From assembly GCA_907165135.1 (NCBI GenBank), contig OU015569.1, positions 3,968,001 to 4,032,000 of the forward strand: a DNA stretch of 64,000 nucleotides, read 5' to 3'. This stretch comes from Oikopleura dioica (Eukaryota > Animalia > Chordata). Shown here piece by piece: positions 5,559 to 62,452 of this stretch. The position numbers and the translations under genes are program-made. The notes below the pieces were generated by a model, which had not been told where the DNA came from, ran no database searches, and saw only the letters and a list, made by a program, of their open reading frames with translations. The number at the start of each line of letters is the position of its first letter. Within the stretch, counting starts at the first letter, position 1.

Positions 5559-8500
5559 ATGGAGGCACTACCGTTTCTGCCGTTCGTCCAAATTCCGCCG
5601 AAGCTAACAGAAACGAACGTCACTCCCTCTTTATCTGGTGCTATTCGTGTGGCCATCGCACAAACGTAAGTTCAACCCCTCTTGCTTGTTCGTGTTTTGT
5701 CGAGCTTTATAATTTTCGCAGGGGGAGGAATCCAGACGAGCATCTTGGCGGCCTGCGTGAGTTCGAGACGCTGCGGAATGCGATGATCGTTGCGATCGGC
5801 GATAGTGCCATTCACAAGTCCTTTCTTGCTGGACCAAGGCTAGGGCTCAGCATATTTTCCGACGACTCTTTTTCGTTACTTAATCTAAAGCCCGCCCTCA
5901 GTTATTACGATGTCTACGGAGACGCGCTTCGGCAATATGCCGTCCAGGCAACTTCGATCTTTAAGCGCTTCAATGGAATTTACATCGAGGGAAATTCGTG
6001 GCAAACGGCGAATCAAAAGAGGAACACTGTAAAGTCCGATACAATGGCGTTTGAGATGGCCAGTGCTCTGTGGAACCATTCGCATTACCTGACCATTCAC
6101 GCGTTGCATGAACTGTCGCTTGAAAACGACGAGAACATCAAACAAGCAGCGACGAACTTCCAGCAAGCGGCCGGATGCCTGACTTACATTCTCGGAAAGT
6201 GCCATGATCTCCCTGGCAAAGATCTCTCGCCTGCCAACATCAAGCTGGGTTCAGTTCTTTTAAATAAGCAACCAGTTGATTGAAATTTTGAGTTTGAACC
6301 CAATTGAAGTTTATAGTCCTGCTCATGCTGCAGCAAGCACACGAAGTTATTGTGATTAAAGCTTTGCGCGACAGTAAACTGCAGAAAACTGCTGCCAAGC
6401 TAGCCTGGACCTGCGCCGATTACTGTGAGCAGCTTGAAGCACTTTTGCCGGAAGAAGCGGGCTACAAATCGTCGGAAATCAAGTTTCTGAAGACATGGAT
6501 CGTCTTCAAAATGGAATTCTTCCAGGCGATTACTCATTTCTGCCAGGGAATGGACGCCGAGGAGAGAAAAGAATACGGCCAGGCAGTGACGTACTTTAGG
6601 CAGGCGAGACAATGTCTCGGAAACTCGCAGAAACAGGCGGCCAAGCTCGATTCCGATAATGACTTGGCGGCGGCATTGGGATACGCGGACGATGTTATCA
6701 ATGGAAAATGCACATCCGCGGAAAACGACAATGAGTTTATCTACCACATGGCCGTCAAGGAAAGCCTCCCACCACCAGGGACTATTTCGAAACCTATTGT
6801 GAACGCAGTTCCGTGGGAGCCAGACGATCGAGAATATTTTGGAGACGTTATATCAGAAGATATCTTTATTTCGAATTCGAACTATTCGGACCGCCTGGAT
6901 CAGCTTTGGCGGGACATCAGCAAAGAAATAGACGACAAAAACAATGAGCTAAAGAGCTGTAAAGAAGCGCTTGTTATTGCTGGAATCGATTTAGAGAGCG
7001 AGAAGACCGACCGATCAGTTCTTCCTGAGAGTCTCATTCAAGCAGCTGCACAAGCAGAAAAAATGCGAAACAATTGTTCGAAGCTCACGACATGTCTCAA
7101 GTCAATCAGCAAGTACGAAAGTCAGGTCGACGAAAAAATAAATGCAGCAGAGAAAAAATTCGTCGCTGACGAAGAAATGCTCAAAAACTGTCCACCGGGC
7201 GATAGTCGAGCTAAATTCGATAAAGATCCGGCTTGGCTTGCTCTTCATGCGCGGATTATGAAAATTAAGAAAGCCGCTGATCAATCGAAGGGCCCAACAT
7301 TAACATGCAAGGATGCAGCTTCGCTGATGGCTGAAAAACTCGAAATGCTAGGAAAGGGACTAGAAGCTGTTCGCGAGGAGCTCCCGGCTGTAGTCATTTC
7401 AGACGACGACGCAGAAGCAATAGGCATGGTGTCGATGCTTCTTTCCAAGATCAGAGAAATGGAAAATCAACGAGAAGAGCAGAAAAAGCTGTTGAAAGAC
7501 GAGCTCGATGCGGACAACATCACGGGTAAATTAGCAGGAGAGCCAGAGCATCTTCACTCAAAAATATTCGACACTGAGATCGCCAAGCACGACATACGAA
7601 TCGGATATCTCCGTCAGAACCTTTCTGCCCAAGGCAACATCTTGGCTGTTTTAGATGACGCGCGAGTCAACTATGCAGGGAAAGGATGCTGATTTTTTTC
7701 ATATTCGTATTGAAAATTCGACCACTTCTCGGTCGCCTTCATAGGCGGAGTAAATAAATACTCCCACTTTACACCTACGATAACTTTTTTCCTCGCGAGA
7801 ACGTTCATTCGAGCGGGAGCGTAGGAATTTAGCGGCGTGATAATCCATAGCGCTGCTTTGAAATTGTTCGCTAGGCGCCAAACGAAAAAAAAACGGTTCG
7901 TTCGCTCAAATCATTTTCAAAAAAAATGCGAGAAAAGGGAGAAATATCAGCATCCCTAATTAAGAGATCTACAGACGTAAAAGAGACTCGACACAGCTTT
8001 ACGATGAAAAATGCTCGCAACTGATAAACGCTATAATCAATTACGACAAGATCTACGAGAAATTGATAGGAGGCCAAAAACTCCTCGAAAAGATTCTCGG
8101 CGAACTTGCGAAGCTCGATTCTCCACTGGAATCCGCGGCAACGCAACGTTCGCAGGCACTACAAAAACTAACAGCCCCCAAACGCCCAGAAAAACCTAAA
8201 CCGGTCGGGAACGCAACAGCTAATCTTCCTAAAGAGATGTTGGAGGAACTGAAAGCGCTGGGACTTGAAGATGACCAAGAGTTCATTGAATTCTTAAAAA
8301 GCTCTGGCGAAATGAAAAACGCTGCGAGCCCTTCCCAGCCGCCTGCAAACATTCCAAAACTCCCCGGTATATCGCCGAAGAAAGTGGCAAATGCGATGCG
8401 CGGCGGGGCTCCTTCTGCTCGGAACTATGAGCCACCAAATTATCAGACTCCAATCAGACCCGTCAAAGCAGCTCCACCACAATTTAACAGGCCATTGCCG

Positions 8501-10839
8501 GCAGATACAAGGAATGTGCAGTCATACAACGGTGGTCCTTCCGTTTCTGCAACTTCCGATTTGCCGCCAAAAATGAACTTTGATTCGACAGTTCGACCCA
8601 CCAAAACAAACGAAACTTATAACTTTCCTGCTTCTACACAGCAAGCTCCGACCATGAATTCGCCAAATGCTAGCTCAGAAGCGGCAACTGAACAATTTAA
8701 AAATGGAAAAACCGAGATCATTCCCGACCAAGGCACGAATATAAACGAAGTTGGTCCATCAAATACAGATCAAGTTCAATCTCAAGTGGACATCTCCAAG
8801 TTTAATCAACAACAGCATCTCCAGCAGCAACGAATGTTCAACTTTCAGCAGCAAGAACTCCAGAAACAGCAGTGGATGATGCAGCAGCAATTCCAAGCCC
8901 AGATGCAGCAGCAGCAACAGCAGATTGAGATGAAACGACGAGAACATGAAGCAAAGCTAGCTCACGAACGTCGAACGATGATGGAGCAAATGAAACAAAT
9001 GGAACAAGAGCGCTCGAAGCTAGAAGATGAACGCCTCAAATTCGAGAAAGAAAGAAAAAATCACCAAGATCATGAGAAACCAAGAGTCCAGTATGTGGCT
9101 CCTATGCCTCAGATGCCACCATCCTCGAGCTTCCAATCACAGCCAACTGGCGAGCAGTGGCTTCTCCAATATCGAAGCCAACATCAGCAACAAAGTACTG
9201 GAGCTCCTGGGAGAAATCCAACTCAGAATTTCGCTCAAGCAAATGTTCAAGGACCAATGCACTACCCGGTAGCACCTGCTGGGCCAAAATTTGTCCCTGT
9301 TTCTCGCCAAAGTCTTACAAGCTCTCCAGCTTCTACCCCTGCGCCTGCAACAAAGATTAAACAACCTTATCGGATGCCTATCATGGCTAATCTTCCCCAT
9401 CCAATCATGCCGCAGATGAGCCAGCAGCCAGTACCTCGTCCAACTAACCCTGTGCAATCAAGTCAAAGCAATCACTCAGTAATACGACAGCCCAACCAGC
9501 CTCCACTGTTGAGACCCACTATCACCTCTAAGCCAATTAACTCCATCGTACCAGTTCCGCAGACAAACTCGATCGCGACGTCAGAGATGAAGAGTACTCA
9601 AGCGAATCGAACTGAGAGCAATTTCGATTTATTATCGAACCTAAGCGAGTTCACTCCCTCACCTACAGAAAAGCCGACAAAAATTCAGAACGCTCAAACG
9701 GTACCAGTTTCAACCAGCTTCGAAACGACCAATTTGCTCAACAAAATTTCCACACTTTCGGCTTCTCGCATTACTCCTCGCCTGGCGAAAGTACCAGACC
9801 ATGCGATTCACTTAATCACGAATACAACGTACCCACCTGACCAATTTCGGATTATGAATAAAACCATCGCTGCCGCCCGATGCTCCACGCAGCATAATCG
9901 CCAACAACAATGTAATTAAAGCTTATCTCTTGTATATTTATATAAATTATTCTCTCAGTGGTTCCCTACGATGAGAACCGCGTTATTCTTCGTGGCCCGG
10001 GGAATGATTACATCAATGCTTCAAGAGTATCCACAATGTGCACCAGTATACCTTTTGCGATCGTTAGTGAAACACCTCTCCCGCCATCTCAAGATGATCT
10101 CTGGCGTATGGCTTGGCAAGAAAATGTAAGAGATTCGATTTTCTGGTTTGTGTTAACAAGGCGAATCTAGATTGAAATTTTGGTGATGATTGCCTCTCCG
10201 GAAGAAGCTACGGATGATTCCATCATGTCTTGGCATCCCAGAGGCTCGAACAGACAATTTCCGCGGGCCGGAATTATCGTCGAGTCTAGAGTAACCGAGA
10301 AGTCAGATTTTGTTTCCGTGTACAATGTTACTTTGTCGAAACAGAATATCAAGGTAAATCTGAGGACTCGCTTTGCATTCTTAATATATATACATAAGCG
10401 CATAGATTTCTTTTAATATCCTTATTATAGCGCACGATATCTGTTTACGAAATCACGCAGTGGGCGGCCCAGCTTACTCCTAATATCGAAGCTCTCGGTG
10501 CGGTAACCGCGAAGATTGCGACACGATTTATCAATCAGCGATCGAAAGATATTCCTATCACGTTCATGAGGTATTCTGTTTAAGAAAACACCGAATTTAA
10601 GCCTTTCCTTTAGTTCAAATGGTGACGCACGATGCGGAACTTTGCTATTTATTATTGTTCTTCTGATAGCACCCGACTTTCACCCCCTTTCGCTTTACAA
10701 AACCCTTCAAGAATCCCGTAGTTCACTTCTGATGTCTCGTATTTCAAAACCAGGTACTATCGATTAAAGGACTATTCGTATTCAGTCATGTTTTTTAGCT
10801 CTGGACATATTCAAATCAATCAACTCCCACATTTCATAA
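5559..10839 (+). CDS. PTPN23: HD-PTP / tyrosine-protein phosphatase non-receptor type 23 (Bro1, V domain, Gln/Pro-rich region, PTP-like domain)
   Basis: N-terminus MEALPFLPFV resembles PTPN23 MEAVPRMPMI. Bro1 motifs AFEMASALWN and LLMLQQAHE; V-domain ELDADNITGKL; long Q/P-rich exon 7965-9911; PTP motifs VPYDENRVIL, DYINAS and LWRMAWQENV. Stop TAA at 10837-10839. Confidence 0.9.
7679..7964 (+). other. Non-canonical GG-AG intron with terminal inverted repeat
   Basis: Needed to join ...VNYA to EIYRRKRD... in frame. GGATGCTGAT (7684-7693) is the perfect reverse complement of ATCAGCATCC (7946-7955). Confidence 0.75.
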
Positions 10840-10903
10840 TGTATAAAGTTCAATTCTTCCTGTTCCACGTCGAATTTCTTCTTCTCCGCCTTCAAAGATT
10901 TCT

Positions 10904-13437
10904 ATGAGTTCAAGCAATTTATATGGCATGTTTAGAATGGTGTGTACTCGTGCTAGACATCGAAAGGAAGCCCAACAAAACATCAACCAGGTGAAACGTT
11001 TCCTTGGAGAGGAACCTCAGGAGGAGTTGGACGAAAGGGACGAAGATTCGCATAGCCGTGCAGATTCTCCAAGCCCGGAAAGAGACTCTAAAGATCCAGA
11101 TTGGAATCCATATGGTGGCATAACTAAGCGCCGACCTGAACGAAAACGAAAGCCTGCAGCTAAAAAGTCTCCAGCGAAAAAGTCGAAGAAACCTCGTAAA
11201 ACCGAGAATACCGATGAATACAAGGCACCCTCCAAACGACGGAAGAAGACTTTTCCGCCTCAGGACAATGAAGATGTCGAGTCTACGCACACAACAAGGG
11301 CCACCTCGAAGAGCATGAAACTTTCGGACATTCCTTTATCGAACGAGACAATCCAGCCCCCAGCTCAAGAACCGTCAGCTCTTGATCGAAAATTCAAGGC
11401 TAAATCCTCCATTTCATTTGCAGACGCGATCAATACCACGGAGAAAACCCCCTCTGTTTTGGAATCCTCAGCAAAAGAAAGGAAAGCTAAGAAAAAGCAA
11501 AAGAAGACGAAATCTAGCCGCGCCCGAGAAAAAGCTGAAGCCGATAAAAAACAGTTGAGCAAGAAGAAAAAGGTAGCAACTTGTACCAAATATTCATAAA
11601 ATATTAACAAATGTGTTTTCAGCGCGGTGTCGAGTTCCAAAAAACAAAAATTGTGTGCCACTATTGCTCAGAATCTCTCTACGAGCACGAGGATGAACGC
11701 AGGAATGCTGAGCACCCTGAAGATGTTACTGTATTGGTAGAAACTCATCTGGCTAATAGACACAACCCTTTTCCGAGAAGCTTCGGTAGAAAGGCAATCT
11801 TTACTTGCTCGTCTTGCAAAGAAAAGTTCGAAACCGCAGATGAAGCAGCTACTCACAATCTCTACCATCGCAAAACAAGTCTCCTTGAGCTGAAGACGAA
11901 ATACAACCTCTGCGAGTCAGACCTGGACAACTACCCAAAGCTTTTCACGCCCGAAGACTATCTCTACCGATTGACCGGAGAGGGCGACGAGATGGCCGAA
12001 GGCGTTCTTCATAAAATAGAGGTAAGATGAATTACCATAAGAATTTTTTGGCCGAAAAAAATTTTTTTGAGATAAGAACATATTCTGAAAGCCCAAGTCG
12101 AAATTAGTCGATTCCCAAATTTCTAGGGCTCAATGACGTCATTATGACGTCATTTATGATGAATAAATGTCCGAAAAGGCTCCAAATTCATGAAACTTTG
12201 GAACGCTTTTTGAGGCGGTTTTTGCTGGAAATAGATTTTTCTATTGATGGCATATTGTTCGCTATCAAAAACTACGTAGGGACCCGAGGTTTATTTTTCG
12301 AACCGACCGGTTTCAAAAATTGAACCGGTCGGTAACGGTTGATATTCAATGGTTTGATCCCGGGTCCCTACGTAGTTTTTCATGGAAAATCCGAATCCGT
12401 CTAGAAAAATAAAATTAAAAAACGTTTTCGGCTCGAAAAAGCGTTCCAAAGACAAAATTTTCAAATCAGCCTGATGACGTCATAATGACGTCATCTGACC
12501 CTAGAATTTGGTGATTCTGTATAACTTTTTACGGGCTTTCAGAATATACCAATATCTCAAAAAAATTTTTTTTGCCCGAAAAATTCTTATGGTAATTCAT
12601 CGTAAGATATTTTTTCGATGGAACACTGCTAGCTTTCTTTTCTAGCGCTTTTTGATTCCGAACAACTCCAAGCGGAGCACTCCTAAATGGCCGGAATACA
12701 AAGTCTTCGATGGGATCCGCTATTATGAGAAGAGCGTCTTGGATTCCGCCTTTTTCTTGAGGGCCGACTTTGACCCAGCCCTCCTCTCTATCCAGACACA
12801 TGAAGAGACAAACGAGGATGGAGTAACTGAGGTCTACTACAATCAAGGGGACTTTCAACTGTACGTCCAGGACTTTATCTATCCTCCGGCGCAGATCATT
12901 CTCACTTTCGACGACGAATCGTTAGAGGCAACTATGGACAGCAAACGATGGGTAAGATTTCTAAAACTTTTTTAATCTTTATCCTCTTATTAGATAGAAA
13001 GCTGCAAGACAGAAGTCGAAGACGAAGATTACGATGTGCCAAACGCGATGTCCGGAGTGATCTTCGATACCGATACGGACACGGATGATGATGATGACGA
13101 TGAAATCCCGCTTCATCTTCATCCTGAAATTGCGCTTTCAGTTGCTGGCCCATCTACTTCGTTTGAAAACGCCCATGACGTCTCCATGAGTAGCAATGAC
13201 ACGATGGAGTCAACCGACATTATGAGAGACCTCGAAGAAATTGAACAAGAGGAGAAAACGGGCACAGCTTATCTTTCGGAAGAAGAGCAAGACGAAGTGG
13301 TCTCCGACGGAGATTCCGACGATGTGATCTTCAATGGATCATATATGCAGGACTTCGGCTTCGATCTCAACCCACAGAACAACAATATCCAGCCTTTGAA
13401 ATACCGACCCGACCGACGAAAGCGAACCAAGCAGTAA
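10904..13437 (+). CDS. Unknown nuclear protein: basic Lys-rich N-terminus, C2H2-like zinc fingers, acidic C-terminus
   Basis: Exons about 10904-11571, 11622-12021, 12645-12951 and 12993-13437 join in frame through GT-AG introns. Motifs CHYC...HLANRH and CSSC...HNLYH. Start could be 10904 or 10937. Confidence 0.7.
12026..12601. mobile_element. 576-bp foldback / long-TIR non-autonomous transposon inside an intron
   Basis: Left GATGAATTACCATAAGAATTTTT...TATTCTGAAAGCCC mirrors the right end. Perfect inner 20-bp inverted repeat AAAAACTACGTAGGGACCCG; central hairpin ACCGACCGGTT..AACCGGTCGGT. GTAA is duplicated at 12022-12025 and 12602-12605. Confidence 0.92.
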
Positions 13438-14169
13438 TCTGATGCAATTCATATATATATATTTATCTCTATACTGATCGACCCTTTTTTCGCATATCTT
13501 CTCTTATACAGTAGCCCATGATATTATCTCACCTAATTGAAAAAAGTTCAAATCAACCTCTTCCGCAACAGTTCTTCATAGACCAAATCTAGTGTTTCCT
13601 CTAAATCTTCAATTGCGGCTTTCTTCTAAATTAATATAGTACATATTTATTGGAGTTCTTCTGATGCTACAAATCATGGAAAACTGTCAAGGCATAACTC
13701 TCATATTCAATCAGTTTATTTTCTCCTGCTGTCGCTATCTTCCCAATTTTTGAACCGTTTGCACTCTTTTATTTTTGCCCCGTTTTTTTTCTCTCCATTT
13801 ATCTTGCCAGCCTGAGCCAAAGGCTTCCGTTATTATTTTCACTTATATTCACTGCCCTTGAAACGTGAATAATTGCAAAACCATTGTTGATCATCATGAT
13901 TTTAGAGGGCCAAATCGAGTTGTTACTACTTGAATAAGAACCAAGTAAAGGAAGAAGCTATATTTTTATTGTTCGCTTATATTGCTGCTGTATATAAATA
14001 AAGAAAAAATCAATAGTTTTTTTTGCGAAATACTTAATTTTGTAAGGCTTTAATTGAATGCAGGCAGTAACAAATTAAGGCTTGAAAGCGCCGAATTGGT
14101 AAACATTACTTTGAACTGGTGCCAGACCGGACAGGACCATCGGTACTCGATGCAAAAGCATGATAGAGT

Positions 14170-14436
14170 TCACAGAGTCGTCTTAATATAAGTTACCTTT
14201 CGCATTAAAGTTCCGATCAAGAGTCTACAGTTACTAAACTTACTAATTGATCTCTTTGGCTGATTTTTTGTCATTTTTTCAAGGACAAATATAGCTAGTT
14301 CTTTGAGCGCGTATCCGATTATGAGCAGCCCAACGAAAGTGTAAAGAAAAAGAACAATCTCTACGAAAGTGTGTATCGAGCTTGAGCTGTCCTCTGTCAT
14401 CATTTCATTTGAAATCAGAGTTCTGAGAGCTGTCAA
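14170..14436 (-). CDS. Possible exon of a small single-pass membrane protein
   Basis: Hydrophobic stretch IHTFVEIVLFLYTFVGLLIIGYALKELAIFVL and a donor AAG|GTAAC near 14196. Other exons not resolved. Confidence 0.3.
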   Translation of the reverse strand: MTALRTLISNEMMTEDSSSSIHTFVEIVLFLYTFVGLLIIGYALKELAIFVLEKMTKNQPKRSISKFSNCRLLIGTLMRKVTYIKTTL

Positions 14437-15824: not shown

Positions 15825-16280
15825 GTTTGCTCGAGTCAGTTTAAGTATCCATTCGGCGTAATTTTACTTAGGACACTTTTGTTATATTTATGGACTTTTC
15901 GCTGGGAATTTTGGCCCATATAATGAATAATTTCATCTTAGTAAATTTTTTTTGAAAAGAGGATGCTAAAAATGAAGAAAATTTCTTTTCATAAAATCAA
16001 TCCTTTCAAACCGGAAATAGTTACTCACAATTTGACCCGTCTTTTGATTTTAAAAGCGATGCGACTTGCTGGATCTTCTTTGTATAAAATTTTCTTGAGA
16101 ATAGAGCCTGTATCGATTTGATATAAAAGTGGCGTTTTTGTCAAGATCAGTCAATCTTCACAAGTGGTGTAAATGTCTCGGAAAGTGTATGGGAAGGTGG
16201 TCGCGAGCCGTTCATCAATCGGTTAAAATGGGATTAGAGAAGGGCTCAGCCCAGCATGACCTCGCTCGGACCTGATCAAT

Positions 16281-23241: not shown

Positions 23242-26200
23242 GAGCTCGAGTCAAGAGACTTTCAAGTGGAATCTGAATTTCACGATTTCTCACTCGCCCC
23301 AAGCTGGTTATGCTACTGCTAGCAGTGCTAGCAATAGCGATAAGGTATAAATATATATATACGGAGAAGATGAGAGATTAGTGTGATAAGAGATTCACTT
23401 TTGAGGAAAAAACGAAGTGAAAATTTTGTTCAGGCATGTGAGCTGTACGAAGAGGATAGACGTGAATTCTGGAGCTACTATTCTCAGGAAATGATTATTT
23501 TCATCGATCAAAATTATTTGAACCACACATGTTTTTTGAAAATTATCATCATAAAAAGTGGTGTAATTTCGCCTCGTATAGAAACGATACGCCTTGTATT
23601 TCTGCTGGAAGATGAAGGTCAAATCTTCGCACACAGCCGCTCGAATAATAACTTGTTCGCCTTTGGTATCACCAACTCAGTTGTTCAGTTGGTGCTTCAG
23701 TCAGGCTCTAATGTACAGACATTGACTCGGAGGCTCTCCTCCTCAAGAAGTCGCTATCAAGAGATTCTCATCACCTTTCCTCAATCAGGAACTGCCGTGC
23801 TTTCGGTCAATGGCGGAATTCCAGTTCAAATTACGCTTCCTCGCTTTCAACCACTCAATAACGTCGATCAAGGCTCAATAACAAGAATAGGAGCAGGAAG
23901 ACTCTTTGGCTTTGGACAGAGTGCTACTGGCTGCGTTCGCAAGCTTTACATTAATGGACGCGGAATAAATCTAGATTTTCTTTCCAGCTGCCCTCTCAGA
24001 AGAGTCGATGAATGTGCTCGCGAGTACTGCCTTTTTCCAGAAACTGAAGAGTGCTTTAAAACAACAGGTTTCCTATTCATTAGAAATTTTGCCAAAACGA
24101 CTAATAAGCTTGCGATCGAGAGATTTCTCTGAATTTTCAACGACGTAACATCGGCAGCATTGTTGAATTTTCTTCGAGCTCACAGTGGTATCTTCATGGA
24201 TTCAATATACAAGTAACAGCACCAGTCTCATTCCAGATTTCTCTTTCAACGTAACAATATTTTTTTTAATAAAATTTGCATATAAACTTAGTAATGCATC
24301 GTTTTATGAAGAAAACGAAACACCAGCCAGCTTTAATTTACCAGTTGGAAATCATAGACGATTTTTTATGTGGCCGATGATATCGAATCGAGTATTTTTC
24401 CATATCACAAGTGGAAGTATTTCAAGATTCCGTATTCTCGGAGGAAGAATAGACGAATGTCAGCTACAGAATGATTTGCCCGGCCGCAGCTGGTGGAAAC
24501 TTGCTAAAACAGCTATAAGCGGCCCTTCAACAGCATTTGATCTCTTCAGAAATTATGGTGTGATCAATGACGAAAATCAGCAAGCCAGAGTTTCTCAGAA
24601 CACTCTCAGCTACAAAAGCAAGCTCGTTGACGAGTGGCAAAGTCTGAATATACGAAGGTAGACTGATTTTCCCAGATTTTTGCTTAAAATTCACAATTTA
24701 GTTGTTTAACGTTTTATTTAGAGTTGAAGTCAATATCATGAGGGTGACGAATGGAGGACCAAGATTAGTCTATTCTGCAATATATGATGGTGAAGGCTCG
24801 TCAAAACTCAGCTGGATTGCAAACCTTCTCTTTGTTATAGTTGACATTGGAAACACGCCAGTTACTTCTTGGTCAGAGCTATCAACAAATTTTCCAGGAG
24901 ATATAGTCGAGTTTCATGCTTCGACAGTGAATTCAACAACTGAACTTCACTTTACAAGAGCTGGAGGTCGCTTTCGAGTTCAGGACATCAGCTGCCTACG
25001 GGACGGAATCCAGGCGGATGATCCATGTGCCGACCAGTGCATAACAGACACTAATTGCCAAGCGTTTCTGATTGGAACTCAGGGTAATTTGTTGATTAAT
25101 TTGACAGGAACCAACAAAGTCTAGGATGTTGCCTTCTTTCTTCATTTAATGAAACGATCGTTGGCTTTCTTACTCAAGCTGAGAGAGAACAAGGGATTGA
25201 AGAGTTTGATACGATATTTCAAAAGACCACGCAGCCGCCTATCAATGTTTGGCCAGAAGGCGCTTTTGACTCGACAGAGATGGAACGTGGATTCCAGTGC
25301 AGATTCAATGGTCCATTATCTGAGCAGAGAGAGCTAAATCTGCACGAAGTAGGATTCTGTAAAAAGAAACGACTCGTATATTTTAGGCGTTCAACTGCGA
25401 AGATGGCGAGATCGCGTCAACAGTTGTAAAATGTTCTGAACGGGGATCACGTGGACCTCGAATATTGCTGATATATTCAAACTACGGAAGGACTCATTCA
25501 AATAGAACCTGTCCTGAGTTAAGAAATATTCCTGATGTGGACTGTGTATCGCCCATGGTTTCCCGGTTTATCGAAAGTTCATGTAATGGAAAACAGCGCT
25601 GCCGTATTGACTTGCCCCTCCTCAAAGAAAATTATCTTGGGGAGCACTGTGATGTCAATGAGGCAATGTTTCTGGATGTTCAGTACAGATGCGAAGACAT
25701 TAGCCCAGCAGAAGCAATTGATTTTTCATCTCTTGATAGCATTCGAGAGACCCCATTGAGGTACTTTCTTGCGATAACTTAAAAACTTATCTTTTGATGA
25801 ATGAATATATTCATTGATATTTTAAGAGAGCTGTATTCCGATATTCTTCATATTGTTGCTGATCCAGAGGGAGAAGAACTTCAAAAAAAGGTTTTCCAAC
25901 TTAGAAATACACGAATAAGTAATCAATGCATTTACCACAAAAATATTACTAAGCAGATCATTAACAAAATTTTAAGAGCATAAATGATTCAATATCATTT
26001 ATTGATGCTGGCTTCCGTCTAACTATTAGTGTAATTGACCCAAAGGTTCTTACTTGTCTTATGTCGTTTTCCGTCCAGTTTATGTTGAGGAACGCACAAA
26101 GAAGGTTTGTCGAGAATATTCGTTCAGATTGACGAAGTTGCTGGTTCATGTCGCGAGAACGTCACAGCCTGCCTCGCTGAAGAAATCAAAGGAACCTCTT

Positions 26201-29200
26201 GGCCAACAAGCTACTGTGGATACATTAACACTTCATGTCCAGAAGGAACAGTTGGGACCGCATTCCGAGTCTGCGGACCCAACGGATGGGAAATGCCAGG
26301 AATGGGTTTTTCAAAATAAACTATGAATATGAATCAAGATATTAAAAAATTGTGGTGGAAATTCCAAGATGAGATTTGTCCCGTTGCGTTTCGCAGAGCA
26401 ATCCAGCTGCTGTAATTGGGACTATTGTCGACGATCCAGACTACTCGGCGGCGCAATTGGCACGTTTGCAAGCTGATTTTCTTGAGCCTGATCACGAAAT
26501 TTTCGGAGGCGATGTTGCTACATCAATCTTGATGATTGATACCTTGCTACAGCTCCAGAAAGCAGAGCTCGATGAAACGAATGATTTGGGAACGATAAAC
26601 AAGAAAGCTGTCCAGGATGCGTTCTGCCTTCTCTTTTTAAGGTTTTTTTTTCCTAGTACAGTTGACTCGCTATCCACAATTTAGACCCGCACAATTTGGC
26701 CCTTTTTTGAGAAATCGGAATAACAAAATAGGGCCAAATTGTGCGAGTGAACTGTATTATGAACGGTAAGTGAACGGGTAAAAGTTCACAGAAAACCTCG
26801 GATCCGCTGTATCTAATTTGATGGACGAGAAACATCTTGATGCATGGGAAGACATCCCTAAAGATCAATGGGCTGGCCGGGCCACTCAAGGAAGCGGTTA
26901 TCGTGATTAATTACCTTTATCTCCCTTTACGCATTTTAATATTAGTAATATTATATCACGAATATTATGCATAAATTAGATTTGATATAACCTTATAAAA
27001 GCGATTGAATTGTTGGAAGAGGCAGGTTTTTTACTGGCTCAGCAAGCTTTTGCAAAGTACAACGACTCCGACCGACCTGAGATCATTGAGGTTCACAGTT
27101 CTTATCCGAACACGGCCCTTCAAGTGGCATCAGTTTTGCCTGCAGGAGGAGACTTGCCAGATGAAATTCTTTTTCCCAACCAGACGATTCCTGTCCTCCC
27201 AGAAAATCACTGGGCCACTGAATCAGGCGAAATATGGGTCCCTGTCGACAAAAGCGACCAGGAAACAACACACCAACTCGTCTTTGCTGTCTATTCGAAT
27301 CTAGACGTTCTTTTTGGCGAAGAAATCGAGGCAAGCTTTTTTTCTGTCGATATCGACGAAGAAATAGGATTGTTTGCATTTTTACAAAACTTTATTATAA
27401 AAATCCATCAAGGAGATATAATATGCATTCATTCAAGATGAAAATGTTGCTTTCGACGAAGACACAGCAAACTCATCGACTACGCTTATGACGACACCTG
27501 GGATAACAGATGGTGGAAATAAAACAACTTGTCTCGTCTTGAACAATGGAACAGAGCGGTGTACAAGTAACGATGAGTCGAAGCCGCATTTGACCCTAAA
27601 CAGCCACATTATTTCTGCGACTTTGCGTCCGCCAAATAACGACTTTTTCCAGATCAAGTCCGTCCAGGGCTGGTTTGTATATTTAACATATTTTTAATCG
27701 ATCAAATGATTTGCAATCCATGAAAAGATACTGCTCAAGCATCAGCAGGCTGCGGCGCGAGATGGGGCCGGTCAGTGCGTTTACTGGAACACGACAGCAC
27801 TCCGCTGGTCGGCAGCGGGATGCAACGCAATCGAGAGCAATAAAACACACACGGTTTGTCGCTGCAATCATTTAACGCACTTCGCAATTTTGATGGATGT
27901 TAATGCCGTTACTGCCGTTATGGATGCAATCGACATATTGGTTCTCACGATAATCACAAGGATCGGACTCATTGTTTCCGTTGTTGCACTGGCCATGGCC
28001 ACGTTCTGCTTTACTTTTATCCCAAACATGAAAAACACCAGGACAATTATTCACAGGTAAGACGAATCACCAAAAAATTAACGATTTCATTTTCGCCTAA
28101 GGAATTTATCATTCTCTTTGTTGATCGCGGAAATTATATTTTTGCTTGGCATTGAATATCAAGAAGGCGAATCACCTGCTGTCTGTGGTGTTATCGCCGG
28201 CTTCATTCATTACTCTTTCTTGGCTGCATTCAGCTGGATGGCACTTGAAGGAACACGAGTTTGCAAGACAACTTAGTTGATGTATTTTCTCGATTCAACA
28301 AGAAAAAAAAATAGCGTAGACAAGATGCATTACAGATATCTAGAGAATATCTCGTCAGTATCATTGATCATAATTTTAATGGAATATAATTATCCTAAAC
28401 TAGCTTATCAATAAACTCGTTTTCAAGGAATTCATTTATATCTTTCGCTAAACCAAGTTTTTAACGTCGATAATCCAGACAAAATGCATTATTACTACGG
28501 CTTTGGATATGCGTTGCCATTGATTATTGTTGGAATAACCTCTTTAGGAAGGGCGCTGGCACTATTTTCTGGAAAGCTATGCAATTTGGAAGTAAACGTG
28601 GCGAAGTTCTCGTAACTTGGAGTCCTGAAAATAAATCTAGCCCGAGCTTTAAAATCGAAAATTATCGTGCGCAGCAATCCGCCCTGTTCAGTCAAATATG
28701 ATCATTACGGTGATCCAGAGCGTGGACATTGTTGGATTAAAGCAAATGAATTCATGATCTGGAGCTTTGCCGGACCCGTCATACTCGTCGCACTCATCAA
28801 TTTCGTTTTTCTGGTGTCGGCGCTGCGAGTCGTCGCCACCCATCGCAAGCACTCCACTAGATCGGCTTCAAAGCTAAGCACATGGTCAGGCTGGATTAAA
28901 TCGAGTGTCGTCCTACTCAGGCAAGTTCTATTAATGGAATGGTCGTATTTATTTTCTAGTTTACTCGGTATAACATGGGGCCTTGGAGTTTTCTTCGTCA
29001 ACGTCGAAACAACTTTTGTGGCGTATCTCTTTACAATAACTAATTCACTACAAGGTAAGAACATGATAGCAACTGCTATGAACCCTCATAAATATCACAT
29101 GCTCGCACAAAAACATTCTAGCGTAGCTGGATTTTACATCTTTTAAAAACATACGATTATACGATAGAAAACATACTACTGCTCCAGATAATTCTTCTTC

Positions 29201-53143: not shown

Positions 53144-56100
53144 ATGAGTTCGCTGAAAGTAAGTATCCGCTTCTACCATATCCGCCTTATTTCTAGCGAC
53201 GATTCAGGTGAAAAATTATTTATTTTTTTCAGAAAGCTGCCTGTGTAACAAGCACCTTCATCGAGTCGCTAGTGTTTACTGGGCCGCTTTTGGGCTGGTC
53301 ATCGCTTGCATTCTGTCTGAAAAGCGAAGGCTACTTCGATACCTGTAGCCAGCCTGTTGAGAGCGTCCATGTTTCTGCCTCCGAGAGCTCGGAGCTAGAG
53401 ACGACGTCTCTTTTAATCAACTCCTCCGAGCATTGTTCAGTCGAGAATGACACCATCTGCGCAGGTGCAAATTAATACTCGTCGGTAACAGCGATTCAAA
53501 AGTATTCAGACCAAACGAAAACCATCAACGACCTGTATACATACGCAGCCATCATTTGCAACATATATTGCCTCGCTTCTGGCTATCTGCTTGACAAGGT
53601 AAGAGAGTTTGCTTTTGTTTTGAACGGGTCGCATTGCTCGAGTAAGGCGGTTTCTGTAACACTCTTGGTGAGAGGCCTTCACAACATTAATATAAACCAA
53701 AACAAGCGCCAAGGCGAGCTTTCACGTGATGTCCGCCGCAGCCGAATCCTCTTTGAGATCGAAGTAAATCCCATTCCGAAATGGCTCCTAACTCCGCAAC
53801 GTCTACTTTTACGGCTTAGAAGCTTTGCCAAGTTACCTATTTCGGTATCTGCAGCTTCCTGTTTAGCATTTAATATCAACAAATCTAGGGGTTGCTTTGT
53901 TGCAACTACTGTCATTTAAGAAATACAGAAAGGAGCTACTTTTGAACTCTGAAATGTTAAGTTCAAAAGCAATCGTAATAAGCGCGTGCCCGCTAATCCA
54001 GTTTTAACAATATTCGATAACATTGATGGATGAGAGCTAAGCCGAATCGGCTTCAGTTACCGAGAAAGGTTCAAACAACGTGGCAGCCCGAATACAGTTC
54101 TTTTCTGTTTCAGTTTTGCCTCTCCACGGCGGATTCGGCTGTGTGAACGCTTGATTTGACTATTTTCCAAACAGAAATGCCTCGATAAGAAAAACGTGGC
54201 CCCAAAAAGATTGTTTGGAAAATTAGCATTGGCATCTCATAGACTCAACTTTGATTAATTGTTCAGCAATTTACGCTCTTTAGTCATCTTTCTTGCTAAT
54301 TTTGTTATTGTCGACTCCTTCTTTAAATATATTTGTAACATAATAGATGCCCGCTTTCGCCAAAATAACGTTGATTAAATTTATTAAAGGCAGTGTAAAG
54401 AAAGCTTTGTTTTGGCGTTTTCGAAGTTTTTCATAAGAAATCATACCTAATTAGTAATTACGTTCGAAGCTCACGAAAACTCACGATAATTAGGCGAGTA
54501 ATTATATGTGGCCTAAATAAAAGTATGCCCTATTCGATTGAATTTTCAGTACGGAACTTGGATCTCGCGCTTCCTATCCTGCCTTTTACTTACAACTGGT
54601 GCGATGCTGATGGCTATTTCCACACCAAGTAGTAGTTATCTATACTACTTTGGCTTTCCGATGATGTCTTCTGGAGGAATAGCCCTGCTTGTCTCCAACA
54701 TCCAAAGTAAGCTGCCTGATGCTCACATTTAGCAACTGCTCAGAGCTGGAGCGGGTACTTAGCAGAGTACTCAGTCTAAGTTGCGCAACTTGAAAAGCGA
54801 GAAGCGCATTTCAGGAAGTTTGCAAGAGAGATAATTCTTTGAATGGAACTTTAGTTGCGAATCTTTATCCCAGCAAGCGCGGAGTAATCATCACCGAGAT
54901 CAACGGCTTGTTCGGCTCATCCTCTGCGGTCTTTTTAATTGTCAAAATGCTCTACCAGAGGTAATTCCCGTTCCAGGCACAGTCCTGCTTATTTTATGGA
55001 CATTTACGATGGTTTCTAAAGTTTAGCGAGTAGGCTTCTTATGGATAGCTTAGCATAACCTTATAACGATAAAGTGGAAGGTATTCTCATGTACTATCGG
55101 CCCATGCAGGGTTTTTGGGATCCTATCTTTGGGGAAAGAGATTGCTTATCTTTCTCGTCCTAAAACTTTGTAACAACACTTAAATAATGTTAAGGTGCCT
55201 ATCTTAGATATTGCGACATAACGGCGTTCTTGTGTTTTGATAAGCTTTTTTTAACATGTCAAAAGTAAAACAATCAGCCGTTCGAACTTCGAAATAAGGC
55301 TAGTAGTTTTGAAGAACACGTGAAATCTTCTTCGAAATCTGTCGTTTAGTGGAATTCCTCTGTCGCGGATCATGATGTCGTACGGTCTGTTGAGCCTCCT
55401 CTGCCTCGTCAAGACATTTCTCCTCATGCCCAGGTGAGCATCTTGCTAATAGTTTAATCGTAGCGCACTCTTACAAATCTTTCAATTACACGAATCATTT
55501 TTATCACGCGCATAACAAACTTTCTTCCGTGAAAAGATTGATCTTTCAGGTACAACATTCCCTTCGACGTGCCACCTGGCTTCGATTTCGGTCTTTGCGA
55601 TCTGCAATCCAAGAAAGGTAACGTCTTGACTTACTGCTGGTCAGAAACGGTCTTGGGCAGAGAGAGGCGGCGACCGTTATTCAAATTTTATGCCTAAATT
55701 GTGAAATGCGCTTCCCACTGCGTCTCTCTCCCACGAATATTTTCAATCAGTGAAAAAAACGAATTTTACAAACTTTCCAAAATGGTAATTTTATGTGTTA
55801 GAAGTTGACGAGAGGAAGGTCGACTTGAGCAAGAAGTCTGAGAGTTTCTCCAATTCTGCAAGGCACGGGTTCTGTTTTTTATTAACTCGTTTCGGATTTC
55901 GATTTATCAAATATGTTTCTTGAAATGACCCTTTCGTAAGCTCCATGCTCTACATTGGATTTCTGTTGTTCTTCGGAATCTTACTGCTGCGCCTCAATTA
56001 TTTTCTGTCGTCTTATTTTGCCTGGCTTTCTGATCTAGGATAAGGTAGAAAAAACTAAGTGCAATTAAATGTCAGCAGATGCGCCCGGTTGTTGCGATTC

Positions 56101-57257
56101 CTTTAAACATATTCCAACAAACTGCTTCTTTCTTATAAAGCAGAGGTTTGAAGCGATCATGGTAAAGTTCAACATCCATTTTTTACCTTTTAAAAGTCAG
56201 ACGCGTCATTCCCGACTGTGATGCCCGCGCAGAGTACATTTCAAAGTACGTCAATATTCTTGGTACGGTTCAGCTGCTCGAAGCGGTCACATACGCTCCT
56301 CTAATTGGCGCTTTCTTCGACTATCTTCGGCGCTTCATCAGAAGGCGCAATGAAAATCTGCCTGAAGAAATCAGCTCTCTAAAAGCGAATTCTGTCTGTC
56401 TCTTTATCTGCCTTATTTTCGGCGTTATATCCACAATTCTGCCCTGCATCGACAACATTGGTGAGTCCTATTACATAGTAACTTGCGTAGTTGGATATTT
56501 GTGTGAACTTAGACTTGAAGCTCGAGTCATATTCGAACGATTTGATAAACTTGTGAAAAAATGATAGCATTAAAGCACTCGTGTTACATGCTTATAGACT
56601 TTGTTGAGCGAAATCGTTCTTGACGCCCTTCTTGAATCATTCTTGCTTCAACTATTTTCTAATGAAGTGTACCCTCTATCAACGCTACACAAGAGTAGAA
56701 ATACGTGTAGCTATGTTATAACAATTCTCGATTAGCATTACAAACAGTCACGATCGTATCACTTTGTCTCTACCGCTGTTTTTACGTTGGAACCATAGGA
56801 CAGGCTTGTTAACCGCGCGCATCTTACCAGGAATGTTACATTTGTAATCTGTGCGTATTGCTTCAGCCCATTGCTAAGCTACCTTTTTAACATATGCGTT
56901 CCCGGTGGAGCACTTCGGCAAACTGTATGGAATCGCTCGCGTTGTCGGTGGCTTCTCAACTTTTTTATCAAAGCCAATTTTCGCCGCAGTTGTTGAAAAC
57001 GATAATGCTTTCAAGGATGCAAATATCGACTTTACGATCGCGCTCAGTAAGTTTTAAATTTTTCCGTAAATTTAAAAAAATACTTAGTACTTTGCTTCGC
57101 CCAACCGATAAATATCTATCGCTGTGCGATGAAAAAAGAAAAAAAGTTCATTGATGAAGATGAAAACAATTTGGAAACAAGTTTCATTCAGAAGGATCAG
57201 TTCAAATTAAAATCTACCAAAATAAGTTACTTCGGAAGGCTCCCAGAATTTAGATGA
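53144..57257 (+). CDS. SLC43-family (LAT3/LAT4/SLC43A3-like) MFS transporter
   Basis: FIESLVFTGPLLGWSSLAFCLKSEGYF, GYLLDKYGTWISR, ANLYPSKRGVIITEINGLFGSSS and FLTYAFPVEHFGKLYG match SLC43 signatures. Stop TGA at 57255-57257. Confidence 0.88.
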
Positions 57258-58092: not shown

Positions 58093-58639
58093 TTTATAAG
58101 TCTCTTTTGGCAGATCAGATTATAAGTTCTGCTCAAACTCAAACAGATCTGTTCCACAGATACCTGGTTTATTATTTTTGTGTTAATAATTGAAAACGAC
58201 TTGCTACAGTTCTTCTCTGGTCAGCCCCAGTATGTATAAATATTTAAGGCGACTCCATTTCAATTTTGTTACTTTCATCGACAAATAATTTAGCCTTGAT
58301 GAGAGCTAATGAAGCTGAGTAGATCAACGATGTCTCATTTTAAATTTTCGGATATAACTAATGCCAATGAAAGTCTCCCCTTTTAAAACCAAAGCTTCTT
58401 ATGATTGCTTATGAAGGTCTTACTTTTGGTCGAATAGACATCCTATTTTTATACTAAAATGGATGTTTTATTATTTTCTTAATGATATATTTATATAAAT
58501 ATGGTAATATTGCCGTGCTATAAATATAAAAACCGTGGTGATTTTACTCTCACTCTGATGAGCAGATGAAAGGCGTCGCTGCGGATGAGGGGTCCATTCT
58601 GTCACTAATACTAAATATACCAAGAAGCTGCTTATATTA

Positions 58640-59190
58640 ACCTAGCAGAATTGAGGAGAAACGAAAATAAGAAAAACGCGCTTTTGGACAAGCATAAACA
58701 AGGTGAAGAGTTAGGTCGAAATAAGGCTTTTACCGTGGAACCTATGCAGACCTATGGATTATGACCCACCGAGAGGAAAGCCTTTCAAGGTAGTTTGCAG
58801 AGTGAATGAGTGGAGATATTCTTCAGGTAACGCATGAGGTCGACTATTACAAACCATTTCTGGAAAAAAGGGAACTATGTGCATGGATTGCAATCTGCAT
58901 TCTTGGTTCTCTCGTCTTCTGCATGTAAGATTCTAAACACATTTTCTGGGCTCGCCTGTTGTCTGCCCTCTCCAGTGCCATAACCACCATTACGGGAAAT
59001 AACAGTTTTCAGAAAACGCTGCATCAAGGAAAGAAAAACACAGTATAGACGAATGATGAGTTCAACTACGCCCGAAGATGAGTTTAACTCGACTGGTACT
59101 CTGCGAGGCCTGGGTCTCAAAATTTTTGTTCATTTGATTCGCATATTAATGAGTGATGGTTCATCACTGATGGACGTTAATAGACCCATC
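58640..59190 (+). CDS. Fragmented multi-exon membrane protein, unknown
   Basis: Short exon-like frames with GT donors: AELRRNENKKNALLDKHKQ; ELCAWIAICILGSLVFC (TM); FRKRCIKERKTQYRRMMSS. Full model not resolved. Confidence 0.3.
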
Positions 59191-60087
59191 TGATCAGGCA
59201 CAAGCAATCGTCTCAACCCTCTGGCAACCCGTTCTACGCGCTACCACAGTGGCGGCATTTTCACCACAGAAGCTTCACAGAAGCTATTCTAAATATTCTA
59301 TCAGGAATTTCTTTTAGAAAAACAAACTCGATAGCCTCTTATTCTCAGTTAAACCAGTGAGCTACATTCGATCATACAATTCAATTTCCCAAGGTGGCTT
59401 TTGTCATCGCCGGCCCTTTTTTATGAAAACTTTGGTTTTTCTGCTCAATAAATACGAAATTTTTCAAAATTGAAGAGATTGAAGGCATTTGAATAGCTGT
59501 ATTGAGTAGCAGTCAAATATCATTATCATGTTCAGAATAATCACACAGACAGAATATAAAAGGGGCAATCGATATTCGAATCGATTGCTTAAAAGACCAT
59601 GCCACTTTATATATTCACGAATTGGCAGATTTATAATCACTTTCTTATTCAGCAGAGCTAAAATGAAAACTCCAAGTAATCGGTGGGAACAAACCCTCGC
59701 TGGCCTTTTTCGTTCTCGATCAACGACCAGCCATCAGACAAACTTCGAAAGAGTGATAGCTGCTCGTTCTTCGACACGGATATGCAGCGCTCAAATTCAG
59801 CCTAGCATATGATACAAATAATAATGTCGAGGGATAAACGTATGTTAAAAGAAAGTTCTTTACTTTTGTATCAGTTCCTTGAATGAAAACATGGCTCTGC
59901 AAGGTCGACCCTTTTCCTCATCCGCTGAAGGCGGCGGCGGCGGTGCAATTGATTTCTTATCGGAGCTCAACTCATTTTCAAAATATCAGTTAGAGATAAA
60001 CCAATCTTCTGAATGTATTCTCATCGTTAGAAGGGTGCTGCTTCCCAGCTGCCCGCATAGTGACACTTTTTTAAGCCATTGTCCTGA

Positions 60088-62452
60088 TTATTGTGCACCT
60101 CGCTCAGCTAATTCTTCGTAAATAGATGAAAAAAACTTCTGAAACATTCAGATTCGAATAGAATTTTTTTAAAGGGTGGAAAACGGTGAATGCGAAATTT
60201 ATTTAGTACGAGCCACTCCTTGGGTTTTAGTTTCTCGATGGGATTGTTGTACTCGGCGCGCTCCGTGTGGTATTGTTTGGATTGTGCGGATCTCGCTACA
60301 TTGGAAAGTTTTGGCGATGCCGGATTCGACTTATTCCGCGCCTTGTTGCGGATGCGTTCGTAAATCTTCGCTGGGGAACGCGATCGACGTGGCGTTCCTC
60401 GCGGGGGCAGTGCTGGCGAGTTACTCGCAGAAGTGGCAAAACTCTTCTCGGGATACGGATCTTATCAATAGTAATGCGAACTCAGAAGGCGCAAATTACC
60501 TTCATAAATTCTACTTGATTGAGTTTCGGAAGTGTTGCTGCGATCGACATACATGTAGCTGCCAGTTCCGAAGGAATCCGCCTCGTCAGGTACCTGTTCG
60601 GGAGCTTCTGGAAGGAGACTACGCCCTCCTATTGAGATTGAACGCTGTCTATTTCCGACGGACGACGAGTAAAACTCATTTAGCTTCTTCTCTCGCAGAG
60701 ATGATCGAGGCTTTTAGAGGAGTCTCCAGACAGTCTTTCATAAAACAAATATTGAATGGATTGAGCTGTCGCTAGTTGTAACCCTTTCCGGAAGCGGTTC
60801 TACGAGTCGATTGTAGCTCCTTCTTATCGAGGAATGGCCGGAGTCCCGCTCCACTCGAGGTGAACTTGGCGCCAGCTTTCGCGAAATCGTCGGCGTCGGC
60901 ATTCCCAAAGTGATCTCATCAAATTTTAAATTCTTCAGATTTGGCAGTTCCACTTCGGCAGGACGCGGGTAATCAACGTTTTCTTTTTGTAGCTGTTTTG
61001 TGACCTCTACCTGTAAAACGAGCTTCTTAATCAGATGAATAAACGAAAGTGTGTTTGATTCGAAGCGTTCCTGATCGTCATTAGGATTGACAGAAGAGAT
61101 GGTCATTTTCAATTTTTTGAGTTGCGCAGAGCGCTTCTCAATCAGATTAGTCTCAATCTTGACAATGTTAGTGAGTAGCTCGAGCCACGTGTTCGAATTT
61201 TTCGAATACACTTCTTGTAGAGTACGACATGCGTTTGGTATCACGTGCTCAACACTTGATCTTTGTAGTTGATTGAACTTATCCACTTGCAGAGAATATT
61301 CTTCTGTCGAACTCTGGCATCGAGTTTATAAACTGCGCATTTAGTAAAAAGAGAGTATTCTTCGATTTCTGACTATCAAACTTGGATTGTTTATAAACAC
61401 GTATCTCAAAGAGGGCCATCTTATCAGCGTAGACGACTCTGTACTTATCAACGTCCTTGGAGTTCTGGTGCTTTTCGTAACTGTTGAGTGCTTTACAATG
61501 GGCCTTTGCTCGCCGCTCGTTTTCGTATTTAGCCTTCTGAAGTGCTCTCCTCGCGTCACTCAGGCACTCCCTATCTCGACGTAGATCTGTAATAACGTAG
61601 TCTTTGGTCCGCGATAAAGTGAAAACCTCCTGTTCAATCGACACGTTCTGGAGTTCCTCGAGCATTTCTTCCGCCAGGTAGCAATTACTCTTACGCAACA
61701 CTCGCGCCACAGGAGAGTTGCTATCTGTTCCTTTAGAGGACTTTTCGTGCGTGTCTGCTTTCGCGTGGCAGTAGTCGAAAAGCGCATAGAAAGAGTTGAA
61801 GCAGCTGTCCTTAGACTTGTTCGTCTTCAGATGATGCTTCTTGCAAATATGCTTCAACTTTTTATTAAATTCTTGCTTTTTTGGGTGAACATTCTTTTCG
61901 CGCCGACAACACTGCTAGCTGAATAATATACAGCTGGCATACGTCTTCGATTGTGTCGTCTAAGTACACATCTTTCAGAACATAGCATACTTCGCATAAA
62001 ATGACAACGGTTAATACTATAGATCTCTGCTGAAACCACTCTGTCTTGCCGCCAATTGTACGCTACTGTTATCATTCAATTTTTCCCCATGTAATTTGTC
62101 CCGATAAACTTGGAGAAGTCGTAAAGCAGTCTTTGAAATTGATCAATCTCAATTTTCAATTTATACTTTTCATTCTCAAGCTAGAGTTCTAGCTTCAATT
62201 CAGCCTCGAAAATGAATAGTTTCGATATATGAGTTTTGGCTTTTATAAATTGGCAGCCGGAAGAGTCGGCATTTAGAGAATTGAACAAAAAAGCTTACCG
62301 CTCTTTCGATATGCTCCTCTCAAAAAGTTCACCATTTCCTTTAGCGCAGCGATATCTTTTAGCAGCGAAATCAACTGTAGGCTTGCCTCGCATCTGTAGT
62401 CAATTTCCTGGAGAAGCTTCTCTGGCGAGTACCACAAAACGCCCCAATCCAT
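60088..62452 (-). CDS. F-BAR domain protein (CIP4/FNBP1-like N-terminus) with a Tyr/Pro-motif tail and no SH3
   Basis: MDWGVLW resembles CIP4 MDWGTELW. KDIAALK|QEFNKKLKHICKKH resembles KERTEVEQAYAKQLRSLVKK. EYSLQVDKFNQLQ...IPNACRTLQE resembles EYAAQLQRFNRDQ...MPQIFDKLQD. Stop TAA at 60090-60088. Confidence 0.7.

Follow-up and report, generated by a model that had tools for sequence, protein, structure and literature searches.

The DNA analysed here is a stretch of 64,000 nucleotides (nt) from the larvacean Oikopleura dioica (assembly GCA_907165135.1, contig OU015569.1, positions 3,968,001 to 4,032,000), which we call the window; coordinates below are positions in it unless another contig is named. 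Among its genes are a PTPN23/HD-PTP-like gene, an adhesion-GPCR gene, a membrane-protein gene and an F-BAR/SH3 gene, and these genes contain introns that begin with GA or GG. Non-GT introns (GA-AG, GG-AG and GC-AG) account for 11–12% of the introns of O. dioica (PMC8008620, PMC7072748). The consensus of the GA donors is AG upstream and A downstream; the mechanism of their splicing is unexplained, and a U1 variant or an unknown factor has been proposed (PMC7072748). An earlier, sequence-only reading of the window listed ten GA/GG-AG introns with self-complementary ends. We followed up these ten introns and one additional intron (59802–59877). Our results show that the stem that closes these introns is a real and conserved structural feature of weak-donor introns, and that it is specific to this class.

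We describe each stem by its offsets from the 5' and 3' ends of the intron, and call the 3' offset minus the 5' offset d, so that a stem at 5/9 has d = 4. The PTPN23/HD-PTP-like gene carries a GG-AG intron of 286 nt (7679–7964, forward strand) with a perfect stem of 10 base pairs (bp) at 5/9. Its minimum free energy (MFE) fold closes at 5/9 with 16 pairs (z = -4.95), and the closing stem sits inside an imperfect inverted repeat of about 40 nt (17 nt at 88%, 24 nt at 75%). Upstream of a LamG-coding exon lies a putative GA-AG intron of 71 nt (23488–23558, forward strand) with a stem of 12/13 at 3/9 (d = 6).

Six listed introns, all on the forward strand, lie in the adhesion-GPCR gene. I1 (26616–26784, GA-AG, 169 nt) has a weak stem of 5–7 bp at 4/8 (1/5 in the MFE fold). 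I2 (26891–27001, GA-AG, 111 nt) has a 6-bp stem at 5/9 with the core GTTATC/GATAAC. The two shortest are I3 (27368–27437, GA-AG, 70 nt; stem about 11/15 at 0/3) and I4 (27668–27727, GG-AG, 60 nt; stem 10/12 at 3/7). In I6 (28251–28427, GA-AG, 177 nt) the stem, 11/12 at 0/3, begins at the first intron base, and I7 (28548–28691, GA-AG, 144 nt) closes with AGGGCG/CGCCCT, 6 bp at 2/6. I1 is also strongly folded as a whole (MFE -57.5 kcal/mol, z = -6.1), and apart from the closing stem its positions 70–133 hold an internal inverted repeat.

The last two listed introns lie further downstream. In the membrane-protein gene, a putative GA-AG intron of 158 nt (56039–56196, forward strand) has an 11-bp stem including one G-U pair at 3/7, and the flanking reading frames join. 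In the F-BAR/SH3 gene, on the reverse strand, a GA-AG intron of 463 nt (61876–62338) has the stem GGTGAAC/GTTCACC at 5/8 and a phase-0 junction DIAALK|QEFNKK. The additional GA-AG intron (59802–59877, reverse strand, 76 nt) splits the SH3 domain of the same gene and came from an unbiased stem scan. It has a 9-bp stem, TGATACAAA/TTTGTATCA, at 4/8, and its MFE fold closes at 4/8 with 14 pairs, the same register as in the listed introns. Its removal joins ...CRAMFSFK|AEFERCISVS..., and reading through it leads to a stop after 6 codons.

All ten listed segments read AG|GA...AG or AG|GG...AG, the bar marking the 5' cut, so the claim that every upstream exon ends in AG holds for them without exception. 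Intron position +3 is A in six of the ten. The 3' tails are A-rich, not pyrimidine-rich (47% A at -8 to -3, compared with 23% in GT-AG candidates), and typically end in ..AAAG. The first downstream exon bases are, in list order, A, T, T, C, A, A, G, T, T and C. In their dinucleotides, the exonic AG and the A at +3 these introns resemble the annotated GA/GG/GC-AG introns of O. dioica, for which published accounts give the flanking consensus only and do not describe an end-to-end stem or its register (PMC8008620, PMC7072748).

The terminal inverted repeats are in general 5–14 bp long, and the helix starts 0–5 nt from the 5' cut and 3–9 nt from the 3' cut. When the terminal 25 nt of each intron are compared without gaps, the proposed stems and offsets are recovered, with best diagonals d of 4, 6, 4, 4, 3, 4, 3, 4, 4 and 3 in list order. 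Unconstrained MFE folds of whole introns close end to end in all ten cases, with 7–19 pairs, and the outermost pair lies at d = 3–4 in nine. It had been proposed that intron position +1 faces -4 or -5; this is true for 9/10 introns, the exception being 23488–23558. The stem sequences do differ while the register is common, as claimed: there are eleven different stems and one geometry.

Could such a register arise by chance in this DNA? To obtain a null for the diagonals we drew 20,000 length-matched pseudo-introns from the same window, each with an AG|GR start and an AG end. On diagonal 3 or 4, 9/10 listed introns and 3.9% of the pseudo-introns had a pairing score of 5 or more, and 4/10 and 0.4%, respectively, a score of 7 or more. 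A fold that closes the ends at d = 3–4 occurred in 2.8% of 400 matched pseudo-introns, in 2/44 GT-AG candidates that join open reading frames, and in 0/12 GT-AG sequences verified by RNA joints or orthology. By our own arithmetic, the binomial probability of nine or more out of ten at a rate of 2.8% is about 1e-13. The mean fold z of whole introns is -1.9 for the weak-donor class and -0.19 for the GT-AG candidates. At the scale of the window, the predicted difference in end pairing between these introns and their controls is thus borne out, and the closing-stem geometry is specific to the weak-donor class.

The signature by itself is not diagnostic. Scanning the whole window for AG|G...AG with a stem of at least 7 at d = 3–5 gave 116 matches, compared with 85–124 in shuffled sequence, which is no excess. 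Hence, stem and register describe these introns but do not find them. Among the matches we inspected, one new intron, 59802–59877, was taken as real. Two matches that are in frame, 7312–7377 and 61668–61730, were rejected as introns because orthologues align continuously across both. A further match scores on both strands: at 12123–12504 a perfect 14-bp inverted repeat with the palindrome ATGACGTCAT flanks 378 nt, with no obvious context in which reading frames would be joined.

One could argue that, knowingly or not, boundaries were picked at which AT-rich ends seem to pair. Because AG is repeated at both junctions, each boundary has a freedom of 2 nt or more, and the signature alone is equally common in shuffled sequence. 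The wording that +1 faces -4 or -5 therefore depends on the convention of ending the intron in ...AG; the constant geometry does not. We nevertheless regard such an artefact as hardly credible, for the following reasons. First, neither the matched nulls nor the GT-AG controls reproduce the register. Second, the same register is found in orthologues outside the data from which the introns were first proposed. Third, 8/10 boundaries have independent support from RNA joints, orthologous intron-less sites or orthologous introns.

The RNA evidence comes from three bulk runs with the same species label that are less than 90% identical to the window, and hence from a diverged lineage. Their joints match I1 (26613/26783, both=2), I6 (28247/28425, both=6) and I7 (28545/28690, both=2) exactly, within the AG slide. 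The proposed junctions are thereby confirmed for three introns; a fourth, I3, has a weak joint (2 reads). For the orthologue of the L001 type, this joint confirms the junction CTAG|ACC as well. The RNA also shows canonical introns at 24068–24108 and 28057–28101 and a GC-AG intron at 28921–28959. Removing all claimed introns from the adhesion-GPCR gene at 26.3–29.1 kb gives an uninterrupted GAIN/GPS/7TM protein of 622 amino acids. For 7679–7964 the predicted junction, ...ARVNYA|E|IYRRKRD, agrees with three homologues, one of which is CBY23028.1 (annotated as Oikopleura dioica).

For comparison between lineages we used marine-metagenome contigs that carry the adhesion-GPCR gene: a near-identical population set (L008–L010, 97%), three diverged relatives (L001, L005 and L007) and three more distant ones (L002, L003 and L013). 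The F-BAR gene was compared with a JGI contig (L016), and the PTPN23-like gene region with 23.7 kb of the Bergen reference OdB3 (L017). The window from 826 to 14188 is collinear with OdB3 scaffold FN653020.1 (L017:2701–18456) over about 13 kb, with an exon identity of 72–90%, and CBY23028.1, which stems from the OdB3 assembly GCA_000209535.1, is 82% identical to our query. Together with the low identity of the RNA runs, these values indicate that, by sequence, the window is an O. dioica-complex lineage other than Bergen and other than the lineage of the RNA runs, i.e., a different cryptic lineage from both.

Weak-donor introns come and go between these lineages. The sequence-only reading had proposed a search for intron-less orthologous sites; such sites exist, and for six listed introns (7679–7964, I1, I2, I3, I4 and I6) they are exact. 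OdB3 (L017/L011) has an empty site for 7679–7964, and two further homologues run on without interruption at this junction. L002, L003 and L013 lack I1 and I2, L002 also lacks I3 and I4, and L003 also lacks I6. Whether an empty site reflects gain or loss is judged by parsimony only. The window in turn lacks introns that its relatives have. At window positions 6666–6678, where the window is continuous in frame, OdB3 has a GC-AG intron of its own (L017 about 9452–9616, 152 nt), whose donor, GCTACG, departs from the consensus and whose 6-bp stem lies at 2/7. A putative intron that we call Ix is present in L001 (2632–2747), L005 (924–1174) and L007 (336–417) and missing from the window, where its site is about 27066–27070. 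The upstream exon ends in TG, so that Ix would be readable only as AT-AG, GA-CA, TA-GA or AC-AT; its stem of 8–10 bp lies at d = 4 with a 2–3/6–7 geometry.

Two further observations concern neighbouring cases. A stop-free in-frame segment of 42 nt in the BRO1 region of the PTPN23-like gene (5857–5898, forward strand) may be either a tiny AG...AAAG intron or coding sequence, and at the same site OdB3 has a 220-nt intron that is apparently GG-AG. In the distant Oikopleura-like lineage L003, an intron at 1096–1195 that starts with GT has an off-consensus donor, GTTGGG, a 3' end rich in A (ATTAAAG), and closing helices TTG/CAA and TCCACA/TGTGGA at d = 5–6. This intron hints that the class is defined by the weakness of the donor and not by its dinucleotide.

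Stems in the register of the window's introns are kept across these lineages, OdB3 included. Between the window and L001, L005 and L007, four-fold degenerate sites are 40–45% identical, which is near saturation, intron interiors align no better than shuffled sequence, and orthologous introns differ in length by up to five-fold (169 vs 69 nt; 60 vs 181 and 296 nt). Yet 11/13 orthologous introns in relatives close end to end at d = 2–5 in their MFE folds. At the 5' end, identity is 52–100% over offsets 0–11. At the 3' end it is 76–100% at offsets 0–3 (the terminal AAAG) and 52–81% at offsets 6–15 (the 3' arm), with a neutral-looking dip to 29–43% at spacer offsets 4–5 in between. Across five intron families, 75% of the cells are paired in the true register, compared with 35–40% when the register is slid by 1–4 nt. 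Within the window's lineage we see the same contrast: stem arms have 0 differences in 90 positions and single-stranded tails 1 in 56, while intron interiors have 29 in 585 (about 5%); exons have 22 in 1867. Both stem arms are under purifying selection.

The orthologues of I1 in L001 and L005 are 69 nt long. The core of I2 is unchanged in L005 and has one change each in L001 and L007, in introns of 73–92 nt. The I4 orthologues, 181 nt in L001 (GG-AG) and 296 nt in L007 (GC-AG), have their stems at d = 5. Only the first and last 16 nt or so of I6 align with an unspliced contig of another lineage, in which the 362 letters separating them are unrelated, and other-lineage contigs align with I7 over its first 15 and last 11 nt only; I7 is identical in L008–L010. 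A protein search with exon 28694–28918 matched only the window's own protein. In L001, L005 and L007, the I3 orthologue has a different stem, AAAGCAGTT/AACTGCTTT, in the same register, and only two outer pairs, TG/CA at 3,4/6,7, are shared with the window. The orthologue of 61876–62338 (L016:1102–1436, 335 nt) has an identical stem. In this pair about 100 nt at each end can be aligned at roughly 80–85%, which goes beyond the stem and exceeds the four-fold identity in the GPCR gene; the intron may hold an embedded element.

If the stems were simply the decaying terminal inverted repeats of insertions that resemble miniature inverted-repeat transposable elements, without any present function, then we would expect presence and absence to be lineage specific, as they are, and the longest inverted repeat to sit in the youngest intron, as it does. 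There is also a precedent in the sister larvacean lineage Fritillaria, where non-canonical splice sites are transposon inverted repeats (10.1101/2025.08.15.670264; PMC11282704). Neutral decay, however, should not spare the arms at a divergence where interiors are randomised, nor leave them free of polymorphism within a lineage while interiors differ at 5% of positions. Moreover, neither a duplication beyond AG nor, in the window and its relatives' loci, further copies were found. The conservation of the arms between and within lineages, together with the replacement of the I3 stem in an unchanged register, leads us to reject purely neutral relics, which we consider very improbable.

The explanation we favour, and hold to be probable though well short of settled, is that a stem enters together with the intron at insertion, and that selection retains it afterwards because it pairs the ends of an intron with a weak donor. 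The sequence-only reading had offered transposon-born introns and selected stems as alternatives. Arm conservation supports selection, and exact empty sites and the 40-nt repeat support insertion in part. Pure decay is rejected, and neither target-site duplications nor, in the window and its relatives' loci, dispersed copies were found. The youngest intron, 7679–7964, has the longest inverted repeat, with 10 perfect bp in about 40 nt, and older, shared introns have 5–7 bp. This fits birth with an inverted repeat and subsequent decay to a minimum that is maintained.

The mechanism could work as follows. The 5' splice sites of this class, AG|GA or AG|GG (starting with GC or even AT in some relatives), would be very weak, with nothing but AG|G and, in many cases, an A at +3 retained. 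The inverted repeat would enter with the inserted DNA, by analogy with inverted-repeat-bearing intron insertions elsewhere, decay to a minimal stem of 5–7 bp and then be held by selection. As a short intramolecular RNA helix it would join both intron ends, leaving a 3' spacer that exceeds the 5' spacer by 3–4 nt, or by 5 nt in some relatives. The helix would thus substitute for weak linear signals by setting a nearly signal-less donor beside the acceptor, so that a single spliceosome could pair the right sites. Larvaceans have one spliceosome only, which is of the U2 type (cited in 10.1101/2025.08.15.670264). A function of the closing stem in splice-site pairing is likely.

Several observations weigh against this explanation. 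Two introns, 23488–23558 and 56039–56196, are putative, with boundaries drawn from reading-frame logic only; RNA depth at the former is nil in the runs used. All RNA that supports the other junctions is from the diverged lineage. Positions +4 to +6 of an intron normally pair with U1 and U6. A stem that starts at +3 to +6 would occlude these positions; it would need to do its work early and be opened during catalysis. Compensatory substitutions, which the sequence-only reading had proposed as a test, are not in excess: we count 9 double-change pair types in the true register and 3–10 in slid registers, a small sample that does not rise above its control. Apparent cases exist at I2 5:9 (G-C vs T-A) and I4 3:7 (T-A vs G-C). 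G-U outnumber A-C mismatches by about 9 to 5 in a hand count, a skew that is not significant. Hence, arm conservation is directly observed, and selection for pairing as such would follow from three points: the arms are complementary, the stems differ in sequence, and one stem has been almost completely replaced.

The idea that one splice site is taken from a target-site duplication is not supported by the junctions, where the direct repeat is only AG in 7/10 introns and AAG, AAAG or AAGGAA in the others (AAGGAA at both junctions of I6). The empty site of 7679–7964 shows no duplication beyond AG. Further copies, expected of a dispersed family, did not turn up either: a search of the 64-kb window and about 70 kb of relatives' loci with all ten listed introns yielded orthologues only. 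Without target-site duplications and dispersed copies the origin step is weak. Possible sources are a transposon whose target-site duplication is very short, a stem-closed intron that was reverse-spliced into an AG| site, or repair-mediated insertion.

Since arms are conserved without significant covariation, we also have to ask whether the ends are kept for some other reason, for example as protein-binding splicing enhancers or as embedded regulatory or small-RNA elements, with complementarity incidental or secondary. The F-BAR intron, where conservation of about 100 nt per end reaches far beyond the stem, would fit such a function. Eleven different stem sequences in one geometry would not, nor would complementarity in every lineage, and an Rfam scan of the whole window returned no matches. 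Short introns fold too weakly for mirtron-like hairpins. Mirtrons proper we rejected, as the introns of 60–71 nt have folding energies of just -5.8 to -11.2 kcal/mol, the remaining introns are 111–463 nt long, and the overhangs are 3–9 nt and not 2 nt. On balance, another function of the ends seems improbable to us.

A different possibility is that the helix acts as a ruler. Excision would then be defined by geometry, with both cut sites measured from the helix by a specialised spliceosomal factor or a non-spliceosomal activity, along the lines proposed for euglenid nonconventional introns, and the terminal dinucleotides would be secondary. The difference between the offsets is constant (3–4) while 5' offsets span 0–5 and the stem sequences are all different, which speaks for a ruler. 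Ix, which does not start with G, keeps its 2–3/6–7 geometry in L001, L005 and L007, and the 3' spacer is neutral in sequence at offsets 4–5. In Euglena, a code of the form N3-CDG...CH'G-N5-6 has the same architecture with asymmetric spacers, and pairing there is experimentally essential (PMC12501133). But the minimal spliceosomal signals, AG|G...AG, are present in all ten introns of the window, and the register is not strictly fixed, with d = 6 in one intron and d = 2–5 in relatives. Ix, moreover, is a putative intron. We judge ruler-like excision to be unlikely.

The likeness to euglenid nonconventional introns deserves a closer look. Both groups are non-GT, pair their ends a few nucleotides inside the junctions and have a shorter 5' than 3' spacer (3 vs 5–6 nt in Euglena), and in Euglena agilis and E. 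gracilis nonconventional introns coexist with conventional ones in the same genes, as they do here (PMC12501133). Euglena, however, requires a CAG/CTG-type motif at +4 and -8 and a purine as first downstream exon base; its machinery is unknown, and circular products have been reported (PMC12501133). The Oikopleura introns, in a chordate host, have no shared motif, keep AG|G...AG, have spacers of 0–5 and 3–9 nt, and are followed by a purine in only 4/10 cases. By analogy, one might still picture a chordate intron class that is recognised by shape and not by splice-site sequence, in which the helix sets both cuts, the 5' cut 3–4 nt nearer, as an independently evolved counterpart of the euglenid code. 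We think this unlikely. If it were true, any exonic insertion bearing an inverted repeat could be excised at once as an intron.

Within the larvaceans, the closest comparison is Fritillaria borealis. According to two reports that summarise Henriet et al. 2019, this sister lineage also has only a U2-type spliceosome and has lineage-specific non-canonical introns with terminal inverted repeats; most of these introns have AG-AC or AG-AT termini, they show target-site duplications and form repeated families, and they derive from non-autonomous DNA transposons (10.1101/2025.08.15.670264; PMC11282704). Unlike these, the window's introns have GA/GG-AG termini, a duplication of only AG in most cases and no family copies in the sequence searched. 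Among the traits of transposon-derived introns, they show terminal inverted repeats and exact empty sites but no target-site duplication. The introners of Amoebophrya are likewise non-canonical, with inverted repeats of 8–20 nt joining the ends and direct repeats of 3–5 nt over the boundaries, a geometry that would also lengthen the 3' spacer by 3–5 nt (PMC7789003). Those introners, however, form strain-specific repeated families with clear direct repeats (PMC7789003), whereas the stems described here are conserved across deep lineages and the direct repeats are confined to AG in 7/10 introns.

We have found no description of a closing stem or register rule for Oikopleura introns in full-text literature searches, whose coverage did not extend to the original Fritillaria (Henriet 2019) and genome (Denoeud 2010) papers. 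This agrees with the sequence-only reading, which knew of no such description for the lineage. How a single U2-type spliceosome handles the 11–12% of O. dioica introns that do not start with GT has been an open question since the genome paper. A conserved, class-specific stem in a fixed register provides a concrete hypothesis that can be tested by mutation, and a practical rule for gene prediction in larvaceans. It also connects Oikopleura with Fritillaria and its transposon-derived introns and, through convergence, with the nonconventional introns of euglenids. Finally, it suggests a route by which exonic insertions may be tolerated and become permanent introns.

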